Assembly: GCA_937625935.1 (NCBI GenBank)
Contig: OW569357.1
Coordinates: 434,001 to 498,000 of the forward strand
Direction: 5' to 3'
DNA: 64,000 nucleotides
Source: Tetramitus jugosus
Lineage: Eukaryota; Protista; Heterolobosea
Both the position numbers and the translations under genes were made by a program. The notes under the pieces are model-generated. The model saw nothing but the letters and a program-made list of their open reading frames with translations, ran no database searches and was not told the DNA's origin. Each line of letters starts with the position of its first letter. The stretch's first letter is position 1. This document shows, piece by piece, positions 58,490 through 64,000 of the stretch.

Positions 58490-59053
58490 TCAGAAATGAC
58501 CACTACTGCCACCACTTCTACCCTTCTTCTTCAGTGAATTCATCTTTTTTTGTTGAATTCTTTCTCGATCGCTCTTTGCACTTCTGCCGAGCTCATGCTC
58601 CATGACTTGCACAGGTTCATAAGCCGCTTTCAAATACTCTCTCAATCGTTCAATTGCATCCTGCATATTATCACTCTGTGTTCGATGAACCGTGCTCTGT
58701 ATCACTATTTCTCCTTGTTTATTCATCTTTGTAGCATAGAGCTCTTTGAGTCTAGCTTTCACCTCTTCTGGTATCCAATCAGCAGAATCAACATTGAACC
58801 GTAGATCCACCTTTGTGTTCACCTTGTTCACATTTTGTCCTCCTGGCCCGCCAGAACGTGCAAAGGAGAATTGTAGTTTCTCCGTTGGTATTTTTCCGTC
58901 GAAAGAGAGGGTCGAGTTGGATTGTTTGATGACCTTGTACCGATCCAGTAGGATTGTTTGTTGGGAACAATGATACAATCTCTGTTTTCCATGGATCAGC
59001 GATGATTCCGAATGCTTGTTGATTAGGCACCTCAAAGACAACGATCGTCGCAT
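58490..59053 (-). CDS. ICT1: Mitochondrial peptidyl-tRNA hydrolase ICT1/mL62 (ArfB-like)
   Basis: FARSGGPGGQNVNKVNTKVDLRF, HRTQSDN, basic tail; Arg-rich N-terminal presequence from ATG 59053. Confidence 0.93.
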   Translation of the reverse strand: MRRSLSLRCLINKHSESSLIHGKQRLYHCSQQTILLDRYKVIKQSNSTLSFDGKIPTEKLQFSFARSGGPGGQNVNKVNTKVDLRFNVDSADWIPEEVKARLKELYATKMNKQGEIVIQSTVHRTQSDNMQDAIERLREYLKAAYEPVQVMEHELGRSAKSDRERIQQKKMNSLKKKGRSGGSSGHF

Positions 59054-59168
59054 TTTTGTTTCTGTTGCCAGCGTTTCAGTTCCATCGCCGACTGGAATCA
59101 GAAAATTCAGAGCGCAGCACAGATTCCGACAAAAAAAATCGAAGGTTCGACAGGACCAAAAAACCAAC

Positions 59169-61688
59169 ATGTCAACAACAAGCAGAAATACCATGGATCA
59201 CAGTCCGATAACGAACAATACTGGTAGCAGTGTTGGTGATGAAGATCCCACACGATCAACAACAAACATTCATTTATTCAACAACAATGTTGACACTACT
59301 GAAACGACAAGCCATCATCATCACAACAATAATAACAACACACATTCGACTTCGGATTACGATGAAGATGAAGAAGAAGATGCCAATGACGCAGATTATG
59401 AATCATCCAACAATGAAAGTGACTTTGATGAAGATCATCATTCACCAATCATCATTACTACGACTTCTCAACAACAACAGCAGCATGGCTACCTCACAAA
59501 CAAGATGTATGATGATTTGAATCGTCGAAATGATGTACCAGAGGAAAAACGTGTGACTTTTGAACAATGTGCTGACGACTTACTCATACGCAACAGTAGT
59601 ATAGATGATCATTATCACCATCATCATAGCATGTCTGATCCATTTCACATTTCTGATGTTCAAGTCATTCCCGAAGTGACATTGATGGAGGATGAAAATG
59701 ATGATGAACAGGCAATTGCATTATCGTTGCACAAGAACAGCACTAACAATGGCAAGAATTCAATCATGACCAGCAATGGAAACAGTGCTAGTGGTGAAAT
59801 TACAATTCAAATACCATCGTTGCCTTCAGAGACAACCATGTCTCAAATGGATTCTCTGTATGATTTTGGAACTCCACCTTCGTCTGGTGGAGACAAGGAG
59901 CGAATGAATCATTTGAAGAGTCTCATGTTGGCTGATTTGTCTGTTGGTCACGTTCCCTTGACTCAATTCTCTGTGCCATCCACGATTGTTCTTCCATCTG
60001 AGCAGCAAAAGGCCAGAAGCTATGCGATTGGGACAAAGGTTCGACGGAGAGATCGAATGATTCACGAGTCATTTCGTCAGAGGAGACAAAAGCAACGAAC
60101 AAAGCAGAGTGAGAGGCGGTCGGGTAGGGGAATCGGAGAGAGTGTTGATGGTATAAGCACATTGATGGACTCCGGTGATAGAAGAGGCGGCTTTGCGAAT
60201 AGAGATAGAGAAAGTGAGAGGTATTCAATCGATGAAACAGCAGAGTTATCTCTTCCTTCCAACAGTACTTGTATACCGACATCGAGAAGCATAGAGCAGT
60301 TGGATCGTATGGAGTCTCGCTCCTCTCGCTTTGGTTTCACAAAAAGGCATCCATGGGCCAGAAAAATTGCGGATTTCATGCTAGGCGGTCCCTTGTGGAC
60401 AAAGACAAAGCGTTTGAAACGATCAACCAGTTTACAAGATGTTGGAAAGGAGGATGAGAAGGAAGTTCAGGCCACCATCATTGATTTGGGCTATGCGCTC
60501 TCAATTTACGGCACCCCAGCTCACAGATTGGAGTATCATTTGGCACTAGTTGCCAGTTATTATGCTCTGAATTGTACGACATATTCGACACCGAATGGAA
60601 TTTGGATCACATTTGGAAACTATGTAACCGATACGACAACAACGACTCACTTTATTAAGATTCGAGGAGCTTCACTCAACTTGTCCAAGCTATGTTTATT
60701 GGACGAGGTTGCAGAGAAGATTGCGAGTGGTACTATGGCGATTTCTGAAGCTCGAAAGGCAATCAAAGAGGTGATTGAACTAGAGCCAGTGTACAGCAAC
60801 TTTATCTTTATTATTTTCTCTTGCTTTGTTCAAGCAGGAATGTTTAGTGTTTTCTTTGCTGCTAATTTTGGTGAGATATTGGCGTCATTTGCTGCTGGAT
60901 TAATAGTGGGTGCATTGAGTGTTCTTGCATCCAAGTATGAAGCACTCGCTCAAGTGAATACGATTGTATGTGCTCTTGCTGCAGGATTTGTTGGATTGTT
61001 GTTCCGAATCATTATGTCATCCATTGTACCGATATCAGTGTTTGTAGTATCACTCAGTGGAGTCATTTCGTTACTACCTGGATTGACATTTACGTTGGCT
61101 ATTTCAGAATTGTCATCAAGGAATTTGTTGTCCGGATCTACCAGATTGATCTCTGCGTTCGTAACAACGATACAGATTGGATTTGGAGTTCTCGTATCAG
61201 ACAGAGCAAGTCAATATCTATCAATCATAGCATCGGTGCCCGAGGTTGTTACTCGGCATTACCATTCGGTCTTTACGCTGGCTGGCATTATTCCAGTTGT
61301 TGTCATGGCCACAGTGATATCATTGAAGGCACCAAAGTACCCTATTGCATTTGTGTTCATTTTGCTAGATGCATATGCTGCTTTCTTTTGCACGTATTAT
61401 GCGACGAGTTACTTTGGTGTCGAAGTAGGAACAATGCTGGGCTCGTTTGTTGTTGGATTTATTTCAAATGTGTTTGCCGCGGTTTCAGATCATCCAGGTA
61501 TTGTTGTGTCAGCCTGTGGCATTATTTTCTGTCTCCCTGGAGCCCTTGGAAAGAACTCGGCTCGAATCCTCATTGAAGGAGATCCCACTCGTTTTGTTCT
61601 CGAGGTTGTCATCATTGGAATATCGCTTACAGTTGGTCTCATGTTGAGTGATGCGTTTGGATTCAAGAGAAAGAAGTTGAACTTGTAA
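59169..61688 (+). CDS. ThrE/PRM10-like (threonine/serine exporter family) membrane protein
   Basis: LGYALSIYGTPAHRLE, LNLSKL, LLPGLTFTLAISEL...SG..RL, GIIFCLPG; about 10 TM helices after a long disordered N-terminus. Confidence 0.88.
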   Translation: MSTTSRNTMDHSPITNNTGSSVGDEDPTRSTTNIHLFNNNVDTTETTSHHHHNNNNNTHSTSDYDEDEEEDANDADYESSNNESDFDEDHHSPIIITTTSQQQQQHGYLTNKMYDDLNRRNDVPEEKRVTFEQCADDLLIRNSSIDDHYHHHHSMSDPFHISDVQVIPEVTLMEDENDDEQAIALSLHKNSTNNGKNSIMTSNGNSASGEITIQIPSLPSETTMSQMDSLYDFGTPPSSGGDKERMNHLKSLMLADLSVGHVPLTQFSVPSTIVLPSEQQKARSYAIGTKVRRRDRMIHESFRQRRQKQRTKQSERRSGRGIGESVDGISTLMDSGDRRGGFANRDRESERYSIDETAELSLPSNSTCIPTSRSIEQLDRMESRSSRFGFTKRHPWARKIADFMLGGPLWTKTKRLKRSTSLQDVGKEDEKEVQATIIDLGYALSIYGTPAHRLEYHLALVASYYALNCTTYSTPNGIWITFGNYVTDTTTTTHFIKIRGASLNLSKLCLLDEVAEKIASGTMAISEARKAIKEVIELEPVYSNFIFIIFSCFVQAGMFSVFFAANFGEILASFAAGLIVGALSVLASKYEALAQVNTIVCALAAGFVGLLFRIIMSSIVPISVFVVSLSGVISLLPGLTFTLAISELSSRNLLSGSTRLISAFVTTIQIGFGVLVSDRASQYLSIIASVPEVVTRHYHSVFTLAGIIPVVVMATVISLKAPKYPIAFVFILLDAYAAFFCTYYATSYFGVEVGTMLGSFVVGFISNVFAAVSDHPGIVVSACGIIFCLPGALGKNSARILIEGDPTRFVLEVVIIGISLTVGLMLSDAFGFKRKKLNL

Positions 61689-61798
61689 GGTGGGTTGCAA
61701 AATTGAGTGGCGTTGTCCTTCGCCTTGTGGAGTTCTTCCCGTCTTGGAAAATTTGTCATCCAATCCCAAACAAGATAAACACCACACAGCACAACATT

Positions 61799-63586
61799 AT
61801 GATAAGAAGAAGGATCATTCGAATTCGTTTGGGATATCCCATTCATAATAAACACAGGAGCAATGCCATGAAACGTGTCTTTTCTTCGTCCATGAAAACC
61901 GTAAAAGAAGAAAGGGAGTGCACTTTGGAAGAAGGAGTGGATCAGTATCCTTCGCAAGAACAACTCAAAACTTGGAAGTTGGAAAGTGAAGCAAAGAACA
62001 AGGCCTTTGCTCGATCTCTGAATGCCTACAACCTGTTCTTGTGGATGAAGCCCAATGATGCCCTTATCAGATTCAAAAAGGGTCGCATGCTCCTACAGAA
62101 TGGTTACTTGAATGAGGCGATCGAAACATTTCAGTCATCTCTCGAAATTGATGAAAATTACAAGCTATCACATGTTGCTCTGGGATCGGCATATCAGATG
62201 AAGAATTGTAATGGTGTAGCGCTGGAACACTATGTCAAGGCATTGGAAATCGATCCAAACTATAGTCTTGCTCACTTTGGGATCGCTGTATTGTATTCCA
62301 AGCTGCACAAGAATCATGAATCGTTGAATCATTTCCAGAAAGCACTGAGATTGGACTATGAGCAGAAAGTATCTTTTAATACCGTGAGGATGGAGGGGCA
62401 GTACAAGGATCTACTCTATAAAATGTATCAAGACGCAGTGCATGACCCCAGTAAGGTTTTATCGAATATTTACCTCGAAGAGGATTACAAGTACATTGAG
62501 TCAGAAATAACCGGCGATCATACAGTGATTATTCCAGACAAAAGTAAATGCCGCTCGTTGTTCTTGGACTACAAGTCTAAAGCTGGAGATATTGTCGCGC
62601 CAGGAGATGAGATATCATCGGTTGAAATGGAAAAGGTATGCATTAGCTTGTATGCACCAGAAGCAGCCCTCATTACAGATGTGGTGGACAATCCTGAATA
62701 CTCAGTAATCCATCCAGGAACGCCTGTTGTAAAGTACATACCGCTGCAAGTCCGAAAGCTGAAGCCTATCGGACATGGCGACTTCTTACCAACGATACAG
62801 GATGTATCAGCGGAAGATGCGGCAAACATTATCAAAACGGCCAACAATGTTGTAGTTTTGAGCGGTTCTGGCTTATCCAAAGAGAGTGGCCTGAAAACAA
62901 GAAAGGATATGTGGACCACCTTGTCGAGAGAGAAGTATGTCGGCAATTGGAATTTCACACAGGAACCTGAAAGATTATGGGAGTTAGTCAAGGACTTTCT
63001 AGGTGAAGCAAATTTTGATCCTAAACCCAATCCTGCTCACTATGCAGTTGCTGATCTGGAAAAGATGGGATATGTGAAGGCAGTTATTACCCAGAATGTT
63101 GATAATTTGCACCAAGTTTCAGGTAGCACGAATGTCATTGAGATGCATGGAACTTTGTCTGAGACAATCTGTACTACCTGTGATGTTGTCCATGGGCGTT
63201 GTATGGATTATTTGAATAGTGATTTTCCTCCCAAGTGTCCATCATTCCGCAACAAGGAGTGTTGCGTGAATACCTCCAATACAACTGGTATTCTAAAGCC
63301 AAATGTTATCTTATTTGGTGATCTCGTCGATTCAGACAAACTCAAGAAGGCATATGAACTCGTGATGAATTGTGATGTATTGTTAGTTGTAGGAACAGCT
63401 GCTGATGTAACACCTTGCTCAGAACTGCCAGCAATAGTCAGTAAGAACGGTGGTACAATCATTGAAGTGAAGAGGAATCATTCAAGACTTGCCAACCATC
63501 AACTCAAGAACCATAAGTTTGTCTCCGGTGAAGCAGCCACAATTTTACCTGCGATTGTGAATCATATCTCAAAAGGCCGTGACTAA
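61799..63586 (+). CDS. TPR + lipoyl/biotinyl-carrier-like + Sir2 (sirtuin) fusion protein
   Basis: TPRs (EAIETFQSSLEIDENY, ALEHYVKALEIDPNY); lipoyl-like KAGDIVAPGDEISSVEMEKV.....AP; sirtuin GSGLSKESG, PNPAH, ITQNVDNLH, EMHG, CxxC, LKPNVILFGD, VVGT. Confidence 0.88.
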   Translation: MIRRRIIRIRLGYPIHNKHRSNAMKRVFSSSMKTVKEERECTLEEGVDQYPSQEQLKTWKLESEAKNKAFARSLNAYNLFLWMKPNDALIRFKKGRMLLQNGYLNEAIETFQSSLEIDENYKLSHVALGSAYQMKNCNGVALEHYVKALEIDPNYSLAHFGIAVLYSKLHKNHESLNHFQKALRLDYEQKVSFNTVRMEGQYKDLLYKMYQDAVHDPSKVLSNIYLEEDYKYIESEITGDHTVIIPDKSKCRSLFLDYKSKAGDIVAPGDEISSVEMEKVCISLYAPEAALITDVVDNPEYSVIHPGTPVVKYIPLQVRKLKPIGHGDFLPTIQDVSAEDAANIIKTANNVVVLSGSGLSKESGLKTRKDMWTTLSREKYVGNWNFTQEPERLWELVKDFLGEANFDPKPNPAHYAVADLEKMGYVKAVITQNVDNLHQVSGSTNVIEMHGTLSETICTTCDVVHGRCMDYLNSDFPPKCPSFRNKECCVNTSNTTGILKPNVILFGDLVDSDKLKKAYELVMNCDVLLVVGTAADVTPCSELPAIVSKNGGTIIEVKRNHSRLANHQLKNHKFVSGEAATILPAIVNHISKGRD

Positions 63587-64000
63587 ACTCTTGCCTCCAT
63601 AGTGTAAAACCATGTAATGCATCACATGATATTCCTTGATGTAGTCCAAACTACTATCCGGATTCTTTGCTGAGCCTAGAGATGTCACTGGGACACAACT
63701 AAAACAATATTCTGCTCACATAACTTTGCTCCCTTGAGACCACCTCCAATCTCGTCAGTCTCTCTCATGGGTGTCTGTGCTTGAACTTGTGTGGTACTGT
63801 CAGCACTTCTGTGTCTTCTCTTCTTCCTTGTCAGAACCTTTTCTTATCGTTCGACAGTTCATTTCTTGCACTCTCAGCACCCGTAAGGGAAGACAGCTCT
63901 CGAAATCCTTCTTATTTGCTAAACTTTTTTCGTGTCTTCAAGGCAGTCCGTGTACTGAGAGAGTTCTGGAAAAGGTTCATTGTTTCTTGTGTTGTTGATT

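Follow-up and report, generated by a model that had tools for sequence, protein, structure and literature searches.

A specialised sirtuin clade that is tied to a dedicated lipoyl carrier outside the dehydrogenases has already been described. SirTM is linked with the carrier GcvH-L, a Zn-macrodomain protein and LplA2 (PMC4518038; PMC12440151; PMC11490716), in a bacterial operon or, in eukaryotes, as a fusion. The SirTM class is defined by a QG motif in place of HG and by the linked macrodomain (PMC4518038), and ADP-ribosylation of lipoylated GcvH-L both protects the lipoate and regulates how it is handed over to E2 (PMC12440151). The His-type Zn sirtuins SIRT4, CobB from E. coli and SrtN from B. 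subtilis, for which the lipoyl-lysine of E2 subunits is the proposed substrate, have lipoamidase activity and lower the activity of PDH/KDH (PMC5596343). SIRT4 is mitochondrial, and the lipoylated proteins of eukaryotes are mainly found in this compartment (PMC12354856). Here, we describe a gene of the heterolobosean Tetramitus jugosus that encodes a sirtuin with a lipoyl domain of its own. By analogy, the protein most likely works like the lipoamidase sirtuins, and its gene logic resembles that of SirTM and GcvH-L.

The gene was found in a stretch of 64,000 nucleotides of contig OW569357.1 (positions 434,001 to 498,000, forward strand), which is hereafter called the window and to which all coordinates refer unless stated otherwise. 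An intronless reading frame runs unbroken on the + strand from the ATG at 61799 to the stop codon that ends at 63586. As judged from the frame and its homologues, the protein of 595 amino acids consists of a presequence-like N-terminus, tetratricopeptide repeats (TPRs), a lipoyl domain and a sirtuin domain, and the architecture that an earlier note had read from the window was confirmed in a single 595-codon frame. The start codon is also in frame in a strain from a metagenome, and it agrees with the start of a paralogue of the same layout on contig C44 (76% identity), in which the motif around the carrier lysine reads E-M-D-K. The metagenome contains strain variants of both Tetramitus genes. 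Between the paralogues, dN/dS is about 0.10 for the sirtuin, 0.34 for the TPRs, 0.34 for the lipoyl core and a noisy 0.63 for the whole lipoyl domain. Contigs from RNA libraries span positions 61767-63681 piecewise, and three of them stop at 63652-63681, immediately past the stop codon. The earlier note had pointed to a donor-like site (AAG/GTATGC at 62636), use of which would remove part of the lipoyl segment. Splicing at this site was rejected because four sets of contigs, three of them from soil metatranscriptomes and the fourth from a run of the organism itself, read through without a skip, and because the paralogue keeps the part of the domain that lies downstream of the site; assembled contigs as such cannot prove an mRNA origin, and a rare splice form may exist. 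The gene is intact, duplicated and represented in RNA libraries. In soil strains, a T>A change at 63584 removes the stop codon and adds a C-terminal extension of seven residues, as in P0001. A gene for an exporter of the ThrE/ThrE_2 family (59016-61688, +), whose N-terminus is long and of low complexity, ends 110 bases before the start of the sirtuin frame and is not conserved beside the paralogue. Further upstream, a frame on the other strand (58490-59194, -) has a GGQ motif and, by eye, resembles an ICT1/ArfB-type peptidyl-tRNA hydrolase.

The Arg-rich and acid-free N-terminus (61799-61888, +) is a putative mitochondrial presequence. It has a net charge of +7 over the first 20 residues, and the earliest acidic residue is at position 37. 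The presequence, which the earlier note had raised as a possibility, is supported by a comparison of composition: the net charge of the first 20 residues is +2 to +7 in nine of nine members of the eukaryote and virus type versus -3 to +1 in 14 bacterial TPR-sirtuins. Such basic, acid-poor N-termini support mitochondrial import, as far as composition can indicate it. The TPR array follows at 61994-62368 (+) and comprises three clear repeats at residues ~88-190 and a weaker one ahead of them, in agreement with the three to four repeats that had been counted before. Five Pfam profiles (TPR_1, TPR_2, TPR_8, TPR_11 and TPR_17) exceed their cut-offs across residues ~66-190, with E-values of 1.7e-12 for TPR_1 and 9e-14 for TPR_2, and the array also matches consensus TPR structures.

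The middle segment (residues 238-316; 62510-62746, +) had been recognised in the earlier note by the E2 lipoyl-domain pattern with its modifiable lysine. The Biotin_lipoyl profile of Pfam (PF00364) matches the T. jugosus protein weakly, with an E-value of 0.043 for the whole protein and of 0.002 for the segment alone (18.3 bits, gathering score 22.1). The cut-off is passed by the same segment of P0040 (E 2e-8), by the N-terminus of P0042 and by 11 bacterial partners. Moreover, the segment is in register with the E2 lipoyl domains encoded by the same genome, with glycines at -16 and -10 and a glutamate at -3 relative to Lys279 (AAG at 62633-62635, +; context E-M-E-K-V-C), which aligns with the lipoylated lysine of E2. 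The best match among solved structures is the E2 subunit of 2-oxoglutarate dehydrogenase. An AlphaFold model of the segment, built from an alignment of family members alone that held no E2 sequence, is all-beta (pLDDT 75.5). The first Foldseek matches of the model are human E2/E3BP lipoyl domains (TM 0.72-0.76), the top ones including PDK-L2 complexes. VIA-align gave a Z-score of 9.7 to 3crk_C, which ties with further domains of the barrel-sandwich hybrid fold, both lipoyl and biotinyl ones among them (Z 9-10). The earlier reading of the segment was thus borne out by register, by the profile match of P0040 and by the fold. A model of the full-length protein, for which the alignment had four rows, reached a pLDDT of 39.

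The domain scores 27.6 bits with a profile made from E2 domains only and 15.7 bits with a smaller biotinyl profile, and the E2 profile outscores this smaller profile in all ten family domains that were compared. The Met-Lys-Met motif occurs in no carrier; instead, the members from eukaryotes and viruses have the context x-[DE]-K. The lysine is kept in 22 of 22 linked members, at a domain identity of only ~20%. On the strength of the model and the profiles, the middle segment is a lipoyl-type domain, lipoyl rather than biotinyl. A chance resemblance is excluded by the fold, the profiles and the conservation of the lysine. Glutamate at -3 is usually required by the ligases; it is kept in the eukaryotic and viral members and variable in the bacterial carriers. 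A cysteine at +2 is found in eight of the nine eukaryotic and viral members and in one bacterial member. The domain shares with E2/E3BP lipoyl domains the fold, the Gly-16/Gly-10/Glu-3 spacing and the lysine at the tip of the hairpin. However, the T. jugosus chain has neither an E1/E3-binding nor an acyltransferase domain, and the cysteine at +2 is common in the family. The genome of T. jugosus holds other lipoyl-type domains. One locus (L019/L029; G000:C8:66574-67047, -) encodes tandem E2-type lipoyl domains with intact lysines, and the protein ends in a short tail of hydrophobic residues; no acyltransferase core is in frame, and the product could be a membrane-anchored lipoyl decoy. A similar half-domain with a tail is encoded at L030, and L026 encodes a lipoyl-like domain without the lysine.

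The sirtuin domain (62801-63583, +) is matched by the SIR2 profile of Pfam (PF02146) at residues 356-539 with an E-value of 3.5e-33 and 115.5 bits (cut-off 24). The features of a sirtuin deacylase are present, namely GxGxS, QNVD, the catalytic HG, four Zn cysteines and a motif of the FGE type, and the catalytic His450 (E-M-H-G; 63146-63148, +) is invariant in alignments of the clade. Thus, the complete Zn sirtuin with a catalytic histidine that the earlier note had announced holds for His450, QNVD and the Zn cysteines, but the domain is not canonical. Its cofactor loop reads G-L-K-T-R-K-D-M-W (62888-62914, +), without the conserved phenylalanine of GIPxFR. The canonical G-[IV]-P-x-[FY]-R loop with its aromatic lid is replaced by L-x-T-R in every member of the clade: LxTRxxLW was found in 27 clade proteins versus the canonical loop in 185 ordinary sirtuins, with zero overlap. 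Furthermore, GTA stands for GTS and EVKR for EIN. The phenylalanine of this loop, Phe33 in Sir2Tm, governs the release of nicotinamide (10.1101/027243). As the loop phenylalanine, the serine of GTS and the asparagine of EIN are all changed, the chemistry may differ from ordinary deacylation.

The best sequence matches of the domain, at 35-40% identity, are class U and archaeal class III sirtuins (Sir2Tm, Sir2Af, Plasmodium Sir2A, NF040867), with which it shares the fold and the catalytic motifs; Plasmodium Sir2A and archaeal Sir2 are also the closest solved structures. However, the protein stays below every NCBIfam equivalog cut-off (all those for CobB are missed, with 199 versus 320 bits) and carries extra domains, and its clade is split from the ordinary class U/III sirtuins on a long branch with a support of 100/100. 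The phylogeny that had been proposed as a check therefore places the sirtuin in a separate, TPR-bearing clade; the tree leaves the direction of transfer unfixed. SIRT4, CobB and SrtN are stand-alone enzymes with the canonical GIPxF/YR loop; the clade, in contrast, is phylogenetically separate and has the LxTR loop, its own carrier and TPRs. The genome has 14 SIR2 matches in total, among which other fusions were noted by eye: with a CCCH-like zinc finger (L004), a ZPR1-like domain (L006) and a UBP-type zinc finger (L010).

A family of related proteins was gathered by iterated searches. The clade members carry TPRs ahead of the sirtuin; Pfam detects them in most, and in the most divergent proteins they are weak or visible in the alignment only. 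A lipoyl domain accompanies the TPR-sirtuin in 22 members, in four layouts. The order TPR-lipoyl-sirtuin is found in the two Tetramitus genes and in P0040, which is encoded on a eukaryote-looking contig. Six proteins (P0042, P0049 and P0158-P0161) have the order lipoyl-TPR-sirtuin, and six others, from a Polyangiales genome and relatives, have the order TPR-sirtuin-lipoyl followed by a further C-terminal domain. At seven bacterial loci, one of which is apparently frameshifted, the carrier is encoded by a translationally coupled downstream gene, which overlaps the 3' end of the gene for the sirtuin and whose product has the lipoyl domain at its N-terminus. In a control of 640 kb, a lipoyl domain was present at one of 98 loci of ordinary sirtuins. 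The link between sirtuin and carrier is therefore stronger than the earlier note could know. To arrive at the four layouts, domains must have been fused or shuffled independently at least twice, and since the carrier is a separate protein at seven bacterial loci and is fused in three orders elsewhere, a fixed single-chain geometry in cis is not essential. It can be stated that this is a second, independent pairing of a sirtuin with a lipoyl carrier beside SirTM and GcvH-L.

The carrier is not universal in the clade. Twelve proteins of Myxococcales (Archangium, Hyalangium) are TPR-sirtuins without a fused carrier, and none was found within 6 kb at the one such locus that was checked. In one intron-rich eukaryotic copy, which contains an assembly gap, no lipoyl domain was seen. 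The distribution of the clade is patchy: members occur in predatory myxobacteria, where about 2% of the 401 genomes from the order have one, in amoebae and in a giant virus. No conserved third gene was found around the bacterial loci. Apart from repeat artefacts, a search of 50% representatives with the linker and the lipoyl segment returned only the copy from the strain and a pair of E2 proteins. The C-terminal parts of the carriers are variable. The idea, formed by eye, that those of the operon partners (L148, L149, L155, L157-159) are dead E2 cores was not confirmed (hhalign probability below 1%, E 0.06-0.15, no match to PF00198). The partner at L150 (2211-3263, +) differs from those at L148, L149 and L157-159 and has, by eye, a TIGR02996-like motif and leucine-rich repeats behind the lipoyl domain. 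The bacterial TPR-sirtuin-lipoyl fusions (L045:5030-5896, L151-L156) have a C-terminal domain of ~290 residues in common, for which neither a Pfam match nor a convincing Atlas match was found. A split of the lipoyl domain by inserted TPRs in the lipoyl-first group was also considered and dropped, as the N-terminal domain aligns as a whole. In the lipoyl-first and bacterial members, a short strand with the sequence A-P-[IL]-[VI]-T lies ahead of the sirtuin (62711-62743 in the window); it resembles the last strand of the lipoyl domain and is possibly a relic of the order TPR-lipoyl-sirtuin.

At least one member of the family comes from a giant virus. P0161 is encoded on a contig of 629 kb, where it is flanked by genes for Rpb2 of RNA polymerase and for VLTF3, a late transcription factor of the poxvirus type, and because of these flanking genes the contig is that of a giant virus. 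The contig of P0042 is virus-like, and those of P0158 and P0160 are AT-rich and intronless. The contigs of L042 and L044 are AT-rich (30-32% GC), intronless and gene-dense and may belong to a giant virus or a compact eukaryote; the neighbours of the fusion genes encode eIF5A, ProRS, ADE2, phosphoglycerate dehydrogenase and histidine kinase/response regulator proteins. Scans of IMG/VR revealed no clade members. A survey of viral NAD+ systems from 2022 lists one sirtuin from NCLDV, and lipoyl domains are nowhere mentioned in it (PMC9503650).

That the clade has been linked several times to a carrier whose lysine never varies suggests that lipoyl-lysine is the mark handled by the clade, which probably controls protein lipoylation. 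We consider it about 50% probable that the sirtuin is a dedicated NAD+-dependent lipoamidase or acyl-lipoyl eraser, or a sensor, with its own carrier as the cognate substrate, and that in Tetramitus it acts on the mitochondrial 2-oxoacid dehydrogenases. The protein would be imported into mitochondria, where the lipoyl-transfer enzymes of the host would modify Lys279 as they do with E2 domains. The sirtuin, with its loop remodelled for a bulky group, would then cleave lipoyl- or acyl-lipoyl-lysine in an NAD+-dependent manner, with the E2 subunits of PDH, OGDH and BCKDH as substrates in addition to its own carrier. The carrier, as the nearest and preferred substrate, could report the supply of lipoate or its redox or acylation state and gate the enzyme. 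The outcome would be a brake or quality control on the 2-oxoacid dehydrogenases that responds to NAD+ and lipoate, and giant viruses might carry the sirtuin and its carrier to retune the mitochondrial metabolism of the host. Besides the linkage, the kept lysine and its E2-like context, the conserved histidine, QNVD and Zn site speak for an eraser, as do the low dN/dS of the sirtuin between the paralogues, the lipoamidase activity of other His-type sirtuins, the presequence-like ends of the eukaryotic and viral members and a protein of the BPL/LplA/LipB family encoded in the genome. The changed residues of the loop, GTS and EIN, the variable Glu-3 of the bacterial carriers, the Myxococcales proteins without a carrier and the weaker constraint on the lipoyl domain than on the sirtuin speak against it.

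The alternative that has survived best, although we regard it as unlikely, is that the clade has converged on the SirTM-GcvH-L system, so that ADP-ribosylation by the sirtuin, of the lipoylated carrier or else of a partner, would create a protected lipoate reservoir or a redox switch that supplies E2 subunits with lipoyl groups. In its favour are the altered cofactor loop and the fact that SirTM, too, is paired with a lipoyl carrier that is dedicated to it and non-catalytic (PMC4518038; PMC12440151). However, HG is kept here, and a Gln-to-His mutant of SirTM, which has QG, loses all ADP-ribosylation (PMC4518038). Moreover, the carrier is of the E2 type rather than the GcvH type and is the fusion partner itself, the TPRs are N-terminal, and the hosts are Myxococcota, Heterolobosea and a giant virus. 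In five bacterial genomes, neither a macrodomain nor a lipoate ligase gene is linked to the clade sirtuin; both are located on other contigs. Membership in the SirTM class was rejected because the histidine is invariant, the macrodomain and ligase genes are elsewhere and there is no conserved third gene. In one genome (G943:C1:5456873-5459731), genes for a macrodomain and a BPL/LplA/LipB-family protein lie less than 3 kb apart, far from the clade sirtuin.

A lipoyl domain that is unmodified, or modified only passively, could instead serve for docking or mimic E2, and an ordinary deacylase would thereby be recruited to E1, E3, the PDH kinase or phosphatase or the lipoyl ligases, where acetyl or succinyl marks would be the substrates. 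PDH kinases bind lipoyl domains, and the PDK-L2 complexes among the structural matches fit such a role, as do the varying ligase-recognition residues of the bacterial carriers and the free position of the domain in the chain. An invariant lysine among variable neighbours, however, is what one expects if the residue is modified, and not if the surface is a mimic, and this explanation ranks a little lower and is improbable.

Lower again, and doubtful in our view, is a conflict or immunity module in which the carrier serves as an integrated decoy, the TPRs act as the sensor and the sirtuin, which lacks the lid, would hydrolyse NAD+ once the lipoyl mark is attacked. The patchy distribution over predatory myxobacteria, amoebae and a giant virus, the variable C-terminal domains of the bacterial carriers and the lost loop phenylalanine would suit this model. 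In contrast to anti-phage SIR2 NADases, however, the Zn-binding SIR2 domain is nested beside class U/III deacylases, and the proteins match neither SIR2_2 of Pfam nor a PADLOC system model, the single PADLOC match being 29 residues long. Furthermore, no defence-island neighbours were seen at the bacterial loci, and a host NADase trap with a presequence is unlikely in a virus. That the lysine carries biotin or another acyl group is very improbable: lipoyl and biotinyl carriers have the fold in common and score equally well as structural matches, and the T. jugosus protein has methionine at -2, but the higher E2 scores and the missing Met-Lys-Met motif argue against a biotin carrier, as does the lipoyl-type N-terminal strand with a P-x-L/M surface loop in P0040 and the bacterial members.

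The lipoamidase or acyl-lipoyl eraser thus remains the preferred reading. Neither a fusion of a lipoyl domain with a sirtuin nor the LxTRxxLW clade was found described in full-text searches of an incomplete literature library; the earlier note, which knew of no chain with lipoyl, sirtuin and TPR domains, agrees with this result, and the clade and the fusion are probably undescribed so far. More tentatively, and with a probability below that of the preferred reading, the TPR-sirtuin and its lipoyl carrier may form a new functional class of sirtuin that has a remodelled loop, that reads the lipoyl mark on its dedicated carrier and either erases or transfers it, that is mitochondrial in amoebae and that was captured together with its presequence by giant viruses for use against the 2-oxoacid dehydrogenases of the host. 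The case for sirtuins as physiological lipoamidases has so far rested on the generalists SIRT4 and CobB. A sirtuin clade that is repeatedly tied to a lipoyl carrier offers a single-protein, directly testable system for the chemistry between sirtuins and lipoate, and the loss of phenylalanine from the loop may bring to light a sirtuin mechanism that differs from the usual one. Finally, the giant-virus copy with its presequence-like end suggests that viruses may control the oxidation of pyruvate and 2-oxoglutarate in their hosts.
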